From assembly GCA_009103225.1 (NCBI GenBank), contig RHPI01002504.1, forward strand, positions 124,001 to 188,000: DNA of 64,000 bases, in the 5' to 3' direction. A program made the position numbers and the translations under genes. The stretch's first letter is position 1. Each line of letters begins with the position of its first letter. The stretch comes from Chlorokybus atmophyticus. Lineage: Eukaryota; Plantae; Mesostigma and Chlorokybus algae. This document shows, one piece after another, positions 29,237 through 35,169 of this stretch. Below the pieces are notes generated by a model, which worked only from the letters and a program-made list of their open reading frames with translations, was not told the DNA's origin and made no database searches.

Positions 29237-32200
29237 TCATGAAAAACTCCACAGCAACTTTGGCAATGACGGTGCGGATTGCGTAAGTTCTTCAAAATCT
29301 TCGTCATCGGCCAAGGCACAGCTTGCACCGACTTGGTCTTCATATGAGATCGTGGCCGACATCAGATTATCAGCAAACGGATATTTTGCAGCTGCAAACT
29401 TTTTGAGGGCCTGCTCCTTAAACTCATCAAGTGTCCTGGGTTGATGCAATAACTCAGTGAGGGAAGGGATTGGCGGCAAAACGCAAGTTGTCGCACAGCG
29501 AGCCATGTGCAAGTTGTGCAGTAGACTCCCACTCCGCGCCCCATAAGAAACACTTACCTTAATCCACTCAGCTTGACCTTGATGCAGTGAGGCCACCTGT
29601 CCACGTAACACGTCACACGCTTGGATGTGTGCTGCAAGTCAGATGGAAACCCGCGCTCCTGGGATGCTGCAACATCATCGCACGCGGCACCAGATCGCTG
29701 ATCGTCAGCTGCTGCCTCCAACCTGCAAACTGTGTCCAACCGCTGCGTTGCTTCCGGCACATTCTGCTCTGCGCCTTCAGCACGCGCATCAGCCACGGGC
29801 TCCCTTTTAATTTCGGTATTGCGTGTTTCCTGCTGCTGATGTATGTTACCAGTCTCCAGCAGTTTTGACACAATTGCTCTATGCTGTTCTGGCGTCAGCA
29901 TTTGTGTCAACAACTCAGTCACCATATGTACCATTTCTGCTGACTTGTGTCCGTAGTCAAGATGTTCAAGACACCCTACAGGTGTGTCGGTGGCACCAGC
30001 GTTGCAATCCACCTGCATGGAGGGCCCGGCTGGTGCGTGCTCTGGAATTGTGTTGTTTGTGTTTTCCAACCCGAAGCTACCACCCTGCCCGAGCACGTCT
30101 GCATCATGATCAGCATGATCTGGCTGCACGACATCATCATGGCGTCCCTCTGCTGACTTCTGCCTGTAGTCAATTTCTTTGAGACACCCTGCAGGTGTGT
30201 CTGTGGCAGCAGCACTGCAGTCCGCTTGCATGGAGGGCCCGGCTGGTGTGCGCTCTGGCGACATGTTGTTCGGGGCTTCCAACCCAATGCTGCCACTTTG
30301 CCCAAGCATGTCTGCATCGTGATCACCAGGTTCGGGTTGCGCGACATTATCATGGCTTTGCTCATGGACACTGCAGACATTTGCATCTTGAGGACAGCTG
30401 TTGGGGGCGTCCGCAACTATCTGTGCAGCATCCAAACCCGGCTGCAATACGTTTGCATGGCTCTGAGAATGGTCATTGCCAAGATATGCATCATGAAGGC
30501 AGGTGCTGGGGACTCCCGCGATTGTCTGTGCAATAGCATCAGCCGAACCCGGCTGCAAGTTGTCTTTGATGCTGTGCGTATGGTCATTGCCAAGGTGAGC
30601 ATTATGAGCGCTGTTTGGTGCTGCCATGGATGCCTCACACCCGTTAAGTCGCTCAGAGCCAAGTGGTGTGCCCTCATCGACATTGTGCAAACCAAGCGGA
30701 TGACACTCGCCATCCACAAGAACACGGTTGACGTCATCAGCGTCAATCACCTCCAAAGATAGGAAGCCATCAGCTTCCTGCTGCTCTGCATGGGCCGCTT
30801 GGTCATCCTGAGCTGGTGCAGCCCCTGCCTCTTGCTGAGGTTGTTGTGGCGAGCCGCGTTCTTCGTCCTCGATGATGCACCGTCGCTTGGCCACTGGCAA
30901 CTCACCCGTGTCTGCGCCGCTATCAACTTCTGCAATGTCACGCTTACCGGCACCCTCAGGATCGTGTTGCGGGCCGGTGCGGTCAAGATCCTCGCAAGCT
31001 GCATGCCGCTGAAGCCTCTGCAGCTTTTTGAAGCTGTTTGCAGGGGCAGCAGGAGGAGACGGGGTGCGGGCGGCAGCAGCCGGACGCTTGTCCTGGTTTG
31101 CGGGAGTGGATGGCTCCGCTTCATATGCAGGGGTAAACACCAGTTTCTCCTTGCCTTTTGGAGTTGAGGGCATGGCCGGGGGTTGCGAACCACTAGCAGC
31201 TTCGCCTTTTTTGCCACTTCTCCTGACTGTGCGCTCCTGAGGCATCTCCAGCTGCAATGGAAATCGCACCAACGTGCTTGCACATCTGAGCAAGTTGACC
31301 ACACACACACACACACACACGCGCGCGCACGCGCACACGCACACGCACACGAGAGTGCGCATGCTTGTGTGAGTGCGCCTGTGTGAGAGACGGGGGGGGA
31401 ATAGGTCAGCAGGCCAGGCGTTGAACTGGACCGTCCTCAGCATAGCACGTTGTTGTTAACATATGTGTAGTCAGTGTCATTGTCATACTGACATGCCGAG
31501 TGCTTTGAAACATGCTGAAGCATGTGAGAACTACAATGTCAGCAGGACAACATATGCACAGCTGAGCAAGAATTGCATGTTATGGTTATCCAAGCACTTG
31601 CCTCACATCCCAGACAAGGAGGGGTTGCATGCCGCCGTTGTGCATGGCTGTGAGCAGCCTGATTGTGGTCCATGAAAGCAAGTCAAACCCGCGGGGGTTG
31701 TGCATGGCTTTGAGCAGCCTGATTGTGGTCCATAAAAACAAGTCAAATCTGCGGGGGTCATCGATGGCTGTTGACTGATTAAGATCAATCTGGTCAACAG
31801 TGACGAGGATGAGGAGGCTCATGCTAGGCGTGTCGCGGAGTCGTTGCGGGCTTCTAAGCGGGAGAAACCACCAGAGGAAATGCTTATAGATGAGTTGGCG
31901 GAGCTGGACATGGACAATTACGACAATGATGATGACAAACGTGAGCAGCTCATGCATATCTATGAAGCGGGTCTGATACTGCGAACCTGTGACTTAGTAC
32001 TCGGTGGCTTTGGTAGAGATAGCAGGCACTAAGTGCTGGTTCGCTGAATTTCCTGTTGTGATGCGTGCAGCTGTACAGTTATTTCATGCTAGAAGGCCTG
32101 GTGACGCTTACTACGCTAGTAACGATGATGATCCATACATAACACTAAAAGAGGTATACATGATGTTGCTCACATGGGATGCTTGTTAGCACTTGTCAAG

Positions 32201-35169: not shown

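Follow-up and report, generated by a model that had tools for sequence, protein, structure and literature searches.

Gene Structure and Transcript Evidence

The window analyzed here is a 64,000-nt stretch of the genome of the early-diverging streptophyte alga Chlorokybus atmophyticus (assembly GCA_009103225.1, contig RHPI01002504.1, positions 124,001 to 188,000), and the subject of this work is a real, expressed gene of 11 exons that occupies positions 35169..29237 on its minus strand. When rebuilt from the sequence, the reading frame comes to 2931 nt, encoding 976 aa and a stop codon, and the phases are consistent across all 11 exons. The introns are of the GT-AG type in nine of ten cases, and the tenth, intron 8, is GC-AG. 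The original prediction for this locus, made from the DNA letters and a list of open reading frames, had described a split but coherent gene of ~975 aa with 11 phase-consistent exons, and the rebuilt frame bears this out. The peptides FRLNNYHIY, LGDITSWDACI, AVVRTKRGQYFLGRPAAEYQKF, KRV, EDQVG, and DDEDF, which were quoted in support of that gene, are all present in the model. A further quoted peptide, LLAGSGVQP, has to be withdrawn, as it is the +1 frame over the end of exon 4 and occurs in neither the rebuilt nor the public model.

The exons, all read from the minus strand, divide the protein into recognizable parts. Exon 1 (35074..35169) carries the start codon at 35169-35167 and encodes MENEVD...QSR, in full agreement with the start of the public model discussed below. 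Exon 2 (34739..34919) encodes a basic, Q-rich, helix-prone segment with the sequence KKRK at residues 74-77, and exon 3 (34545..34615) matches the public model. The predicted folded N-terminal region begins in exon 4 (34264..34460; VVFDMQ...FRLNNYHIY...CAVGRV) and continues through exon 5 (34151..34193), a 43-nt exon for the acidic loop SKDEQAAQEAATSED. Exon 6 (33149..33293) contains most of the stretch that aligns with positions 63-108 of the DNMT1-RFD profile, and in exon 7 (32925..33008; EYQKFHQRL) this RFD-like core ends and a helical part begins. Exon 8 (32759..32823) has the GC donor at its 3' end, and exon 9 (32490..32645), also helical, completes the folded region. Intron 9 (31252..32489), which is 1238 nt long as assembled, separates these exons from exon 10 (29558..31251), the source of ~540 aa of acidic, disordered sequence and, from 29622, of the first strands of a probable PB1 domain (KRVTCYVDRWPHCIKVKLSGL). 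The remainder of that domain, including its acidic motif ISYEDQVGASCALADDEDFEEL, is encoded by exon 11 (29237..29435), in which the stop codon lies at 29239-29237.

For the RNA comparison, four public runs that contain exon 10 sequence were aligned on positions 29200-33350. Two of the four, X1 and X2, which belong to different studies, yielded spliced contigs, and since these contigs are spliced, they derive from RNA. Contig 1 of X1 (3604 nt) passes through exons 11 and 10, with all of exon 10 inside it, makes a 1238-nt jump at 31251/32490, and proceeds through exons 9, 8, 7, and 6. The joints 29434/29557, 32644/32758, 32823/32925, and 33008/33149 are seen in both runs; the joint 31251/32490 is seen in X1 only and has exact GT..AG ends. 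At 32644/32758 the position of the joint is ambiguous by 1-3 nt, and shifting it by that ambiguity gives a GC-AG intron, so the exon 8 GC donor at 32759 is supported by RNA. Both runs also show a loose end at 33293 that matches the final 30 nt of exon 5 in reverse complement, and this exon is therefore supported by RNA as well. Five junctions from X1 are repeated independently in X2. Finally, because the X1 contig crosses 31251/32490, the two halves of the gene are on one mRNA. The prediction had called for a single gene with a single transcript, and had named separate transcripts for 31251-29237 and 35169-32490 as the observation that would speak against it; what is found instead is one contig that runs from one segment into the other, joining exons 6-11 with the 1238-nt intron removed.

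The same gene is already in public annotation as a hypothetical protein without domains, the eukprot entry jgi/Chlat1/1583/Chrsp123S01845 (P0001; 967 aa, no domains annotated). A word-index search with exon 10 gave one match, which is P0001, at 100% identity. This model differs from the rebuilt one in two places. It is missing the 16 residues that follow CAVGR, since exon 5 is skipped, and it contains seven extra residues, ASACLRG, since exon 8 is run 21 nt past the GC donor. Chrsp123S01845 is thus wrong at two splice sites that need correction, and the corrected form is backed by transcript contigs from two studies.

Searches for Relatives

Searches with the protein returned only the protein itself. 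With the 967-aa P0001 sequence as query against 1.84 billion cluster representatives, phmmer found P0001 and nothing else; a metagenome locus scan gave no relative, tblastn within the window gave no paralogue, and the contig collection holds no recorded gene with a product that is exactly P0001. The protein is an orphan, restricted to its lineage, with no detectable relative in any other organism. As no homologues were found, there was no alignment to supply to structure prediction, and both AlphaFold runs described below are single-sequence predictions. The lack of a detectable relative elsewhere also limits the general biological reach of the findings.

The C-Terminal Domain

Four kinds of comparison were applied to the C-terminal end of the protein, and all four point to PB1. 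In Pfam, each of the four C-terminal fragments matches PF00564 best, with scores of 14.9-16.3 bits (E 0.0097-0.027; curated cutoff 23.6) over profile positions 8-72 of 84. Exon 11 alone gives the Pfam PB1 match at E=0.033, the one match obtained from exons searched singly, since introns split the domains, and exon 10 alone has no Pfam match. Language-model neighbors in the ESM Atlas are PB1 clusters in 23 of 30 cases; the best of them reaches a score of 0.92 and shares 180 features, and each of the ten best matches that carry a name belongs to the same family or clan as PB1. On the scale of this method, at least 170 shared features are reached by about nine in ten same-family first hits, versus one or two in ten chance hits or distant relatives.

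The phmmer search against the PDB adds a specific alignment. The PB1 domain of AtNBR1 (6tgn) aligns at E 1.7 with ISYEDQVG..ALADDEDF, and the aligned part of AtNBR1 is its acidic motif, with ISYEDQVGASCALADDEDF paired with LTYSDEDGDVVALVDDNDL of the AtNBR1 domain. The two sequences have the first Asp, the Gly, and the DDxD block in common, and two of the central acidic residues give way here to Q/V and A, so that D-Q-V-G-A stands in place of the D-E-D-G-D of AtNBR1. Finally, the single-sequence AlphaFold model of the C-terminus has a predicted local distance difference test score (pLDDT) of 51.7 and leaves strands 1-2 unmodeled. With this model as query, the first 11 Foldseek matches in the PDB are without exception PB1 domains, namely, those of NBR1, AtNBR1, p40/p67phox, IAA17, p62, and MAP2K5, with probabilities up to 0.91, E-values of 0.03-0.2, and template modeling (TM) scores of ~0.5. 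On the basis of these four concordant, individually weak lines of sequence and model evidence, the C-terminal domain is very probably PB1, as had been predicted.

The prediction had also described a basic first strand and an acidic, OPCA-like motif, and here the outcome is mixed. The elements KRV, EDQVG, and DDEDF are present, and a K-R pair stands ahead of the first strand (KRVTCYV). The Pfam alignment begins at profile position 8 (Y886 of P0001), and the basic residue is not securely aligned; the acidic motif, as described above, is partly degenerate.

The N-Terminal Region and the RFTS Question

The segments ahead of the PB1 candidate differ markedly in composition. Residues 1-116 are basic (isoelectric point (pI) 9.7) and rich in Q and K, and the KKRK at residues 74-77 looks like a nuclear localization signal, which would make nuclear import probable. 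Residues 117-346 form a region of ~230 aa that, in a low-confidence model, is folded, β-rich at first and then helical. From 347 to 885, the ~540 residues have an acidic composition (pI 4.7) in which A, P, D, E, and H abound, and Pfam finds no match in them. Within exon 10, this segment contains a tandem duplication of 71 aa with 46 of 71 residues identical (213 bp, two copies, 79% DNA identity, 29936-30356), a pattern that indicates a recent in-frame expansion of the linker.

The folded region was originally proposed to be RFTS-like, and the Pfam results show where that proposal comes from. Pfam ranks PF12047 (DNMT1-RFD) first of all families, both with the whole protein as query (E 0.039) and with each of five N-terminal fragments (E 0.0014-0.0085; 19.1 bits at most). 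The scores overall are 14.4-19.1 bits, under the curated cutoff of 22, and the alignment covers profile positions 63-108 of 144, that is, 46 positions, which leaves two thirds of the profile unmatched. The aligned core (33263-33149 and 33008-32986, minus strand) falls inside exons 6-7, and the junction between them, 33149/33008, is verified by RNA. Exon 4, where the first third of an RFTS domain would be expected, has no Pfam match of its own at E<=10.

Other methods do not extend this match. With residues 105-345, 117-262, and 180-250 of P0001 as queries, phmmer against the PDB finds no DNMT1, MET1, or other RFTS chain at E<=10; the matches to the N-terminal fragments are at chance level (a c-di-GMP-binding protein, T-cell receptor chains, an L,D-transpeptidase). 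The language-model search in the ESM Atlas gives no neighbor for the N-terminal region. The AlphaFold model of residues 95-350 has a pLDDT of 38.8 and is unusable, and Foldseek with it returns noise (TM ~0.1); Arabidopsis MET1, which comes at rank 50 with TM 0.16, does not count as evidence. An alignment by eye with human DNMT1, with about 9 identities over 41 gapless positions around W...T...Y.L..P..EY, is a lead that carries no weight here. DNMT1 RFTS binds zinc via a Cys/His cluster, and in the N-terminal region, read from the sequence, no CxxC or Cys/His cluster is visible. A competing Pfam match, DUF6117 (E 0.005-0.1), was discounted because its alignment runs across a junction in P0001, exon 4|6, that the RNA refutes, and because it vanishes when exons 6-8 only (residues 175-262) are searched.

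Taken as a claim about homology, then, the RFTS-like domain is not established: the PF12047 match is partial and below cutoff, and it is joined by no PDB-chain or language-model match. That the candidate was picked by eye for its resemblance to RFTS further weakens the marginal E-value. We keep the kinship as a lead, and consider it possible but rather doubtful that the N-terminal region is a true RFTS homologue. The accompanying statement that the protein has no methyltransferase domain holds up well. A Pfam search along all 967 aa returned no match to a methyltransferase, BAH, or CXXC family at E<=10, and the protein has no catalytic domain.

Proposed Function and Alternative Explanations

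Considered together, the data tip toward one expressed, lineage-restricted gene whose 976-aa product is modular, with a basic N-terminus, a folded region, an acidic disordered linker, and a C-terminal PB1 domain. By analogy with the plant proteins ARF, Aux/IAA, and NLP, in which PB1 follows a disordered middle, and with p62 and NBR1, which form filaments, the PB1 domain would dock front-to-back onto another PB1 domain, either its own or that of a partner. Such docking would bring the acidic linker, together with the N-terminal binding domain, into a multivalent complex, oligomeric or heteromeric, that would probably be located in the nucleus. The data show the gene structure, its expression as a single spliced mRNA, the orphan status, and the lack of a catalytic domain; the PB1 fold is well supported, and we infer the nuclear location, the oligomerization, and a ligand for the N-terminal domain. 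The original prediction had gone further, to a self-oligomerizing chromatin reader, and we do not retain that description. It was built on top of the unproven RFTS domain, and since the acidic motif is partly degenerate, head-to-tail polymerization is not established.

Several points weigh against the modular scaffold as we describe it. Each line of evidence for PB1, taken alone, is below significance (16 bits versus 23.6 in Pfam, Foldseek E-values of at least 0.03, and a pLDDT of 51.7). The acidic motif is partly degenerate, with two of its central acidic residues missing, and the canonical β1 lysine is not securely aligned, as the Pfam alignment starts at profile position 8. Nuclear location depends on a single short basic motif. 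The junctions of exons 1-4 were placed from splice signals and agreement with the public model. Finally, with no orthologues at hand, there is no sign from conservation that selection acts on any part of the protein.

The scaffold has to be weighed against a bolder account, in which residues ~117-346 make up a real but much diverged RFTS domain of the DNMT1/MET1/Raf2 type that has no methyltransferase and is fused to a polymerizing PB1 domain. The protein would then oligomerize with itself and serve ubiquitylated H3, or else a silencing E3 ligase, as reader or adaptor. The consistency with which PF12047 comes out as the best family, in the whole protein and in all five N-terminal fragments, argues for it, as does the location of the matched stretch wholly within RNA-verified exons. 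The RFTS C-lobe of DNMT1 is helical, and the helical region that follows the match in the low-confidence model is what would be expected of such a lobe. These points are offset by scores below 22 bits over 46 of 144 positions, the blank result with exon 4 alone, the lack of any RFTS chain in the PDB searches or neighbor in the language-model search, a fold model that cannot be used, the missing counterpart of the DNMT1 zinc site, and the inflation of a marginal E-value that comes with selection by eye. We regard this account as unlikely, though worth pursuing.

An opposite possibility is that neither domain is real and that the PB1 and RFD matches arose by chance in a young, fast-evolving, mostly disordered orphan. 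The failure of phmmer and of the metagenome scan to find a relative would fit such an origin, as would domain matches that are all under their curated thresholds, two structure predictions of low confidence, and a sequence that is acidic and of low complexity over more than half its length, where part of it has recently been duplicated. However, four methods that draw on different information agree on PB1 in the same 90 residues, and a joint chance agreement of this kind is unlikely; the best language-model match, at 180 features, also exceeds the 170 that about nine in ten same-family first hits reach. Moreover, ten correctly spliced introns are kept, and transcripts are well represented in two studies. 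A chance origin of both matches is accordingly improbable in our estimation. It is more improbable still that the halves 35169-32490 and 31251-29237 are separate genes that an annotation or assembly error joined at the gap in intron 9. The assembly is unreliable at this point, where the intron contains the gap letter at 32443 along with 1041 bp that exactly duplicate a stretch lying 5.6 kb off, and the junction 31251/32490 is crossed by a contig of X1 only. That contig, however, joins 32490 to 31251 at GT..AG and stays in frame through five more junctions, and the independently built public model contains the same junction with the frame preserved.

Comparison with Known Systems

The known proteins closest in plan to the one described here are the PB1 scaffolds and adaptors (PF00564) such as ARF, Aux/IAA, NLP, and NBR1/p62, which it resembles in having a C-terminal domain of ~90 aa that matches PB1 best by profile, language model, sequence, and fold. 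Plant proteins with a C-terminal PB1 domain combine it with an N-terminal functional domain and a long disordered middle, and the predicted layout here is alike. The likeness extends in part to the acidic motif, where Y-x-D...G...A-L-x-D-D-x-D-[LF] aligns with the motif of AtNBR1. In contrast to these proteins, this one has no B3, RWP-RK, UBA, ZZ, or kinase domain. The searches linked it to no orthologue in a named PB1 family, its central acidic triad is degenerate (D-Q-V-G-A), and its Pfam score is below the cutoff.

The resemblance to the RFTS domain of DNMT1/MET1 (PF12047) consists of 46 residues of the W…T…Y.L..P..EY..F type from the middle of the profile, followed by predicted helices. 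In contrast to DNMT1/MET1, the protein has neither BAH, CXXC, and methyltransferase domains nor visible zinc-site cysteines, and it does not match any solved RFTS structure. If the RFTS assignment were correct, the appropriate comparison would be fission yeast Raf2, which represents the only described kind of methyltransferase-less RFTS protein. Raf2 combines an RFTS domain with a C2H2 zinc finger and is a subunit of the Clr4-Rik1-Cul4 complex, in which the RFTS domain acts as a module for protein interaction and is needed for Cul4 binding, and RFTS proteins without a methyltransferase are stated to be fungus-specific (PMC4121317). Raf2 differs from the protein described here by its zinc finger and the lack of a PB1 domain, and the likeness between the two depends on the proposed RFTS domain rather than on a sequence relation.

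None of the papers available to a literature search combines RFTS with a PB1 domain. The RFTS+PB1 architecture is not established, and would be new if real. A genuine, very diverged RFTS domain in this protein would be the first that is free of a methyltransferase outside fungi and the first RFTS-PB1 fusion, making the product an oligomeric adaptor for chromatin or ubiquitin marks in a streptophyte lineage that is among the earliest to branch; we rate this full proposal as unlikely, a little more so than the RFTS homology itself. Were the kinship true, the green lineage too would be shown to use RFTS as a module that is portable between proteins and acts as reader or adaptor, here coupled to an oligomerization domain. 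The reading that we prefer, an expressed, lineage-restricted PB1 scaffold, probably nuclear, with a long acidic disordered middle, would make the gene a case in which a lineage-specific and otherwise unrecognizable protein has acquired a PB1 domain, with RFTS kinship as a lead.

Intron 5, Intron 9, and Neighboring Genes

Two introns of the gene contain sequence that bears on the quality of the assembly. Intron 5 includes a (GA)359 microsatellite at 33400..34118, a tract of 719 bp with 99% matches and one N at 33457, and the genomic length of this tract is uncertain. In intron 9, blastn against the window shows that the 1041-bp stretch at 31402-32442 is a 100% identical, same-strand copy of 25748-26788 whose end falls precisely on the gap N at 32443. 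The block reproduces 5' exons and introns of a neighboring WD40 gene on the plus strand. It is probably a gap-filling or assembly artifact, which is flagged here for users of the assembly, and otherwise would be a very recent segmental copy. True intron 9 may therefore be much shorter, or its length may not be fixed by the assembly; the spliced product of the gene is unaffected by the copy.

A plus-strand spliced contig that aligns within intron 9 could be taken for a nested antisense gene, a candidate that we rejected. The contig runs on into 25357-25386 and 26789-26818, and given the 100% identity of the copied block, its transcript is that of the WD40 gene at a distance of 5.6 kb. This neighbor is a plus-strand, spliced gene at ~25357-28102, in which the open reading frame 27344-28102 matches Pfam WD40 at E 4e-19. 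Its exons, as given by the RNA contigs in the coordinates of the copy, are 31799-31940, 32071-32151, 32259-32354, and 32416-32442, after which the transcript continues at 26789. The acidic N-terminus of the WD40 protein (...LEDFVITDSD...LLEV) may resemble that of periodic tryptophan protein 1 (PWP1). Elsewhere in the window, the minus-strand open reading frame 17217-18143 (308 aa) matches the TamB family (PF04357, E 1e-15) and is presumably part of a plastid TIC236/TamB-like gene.

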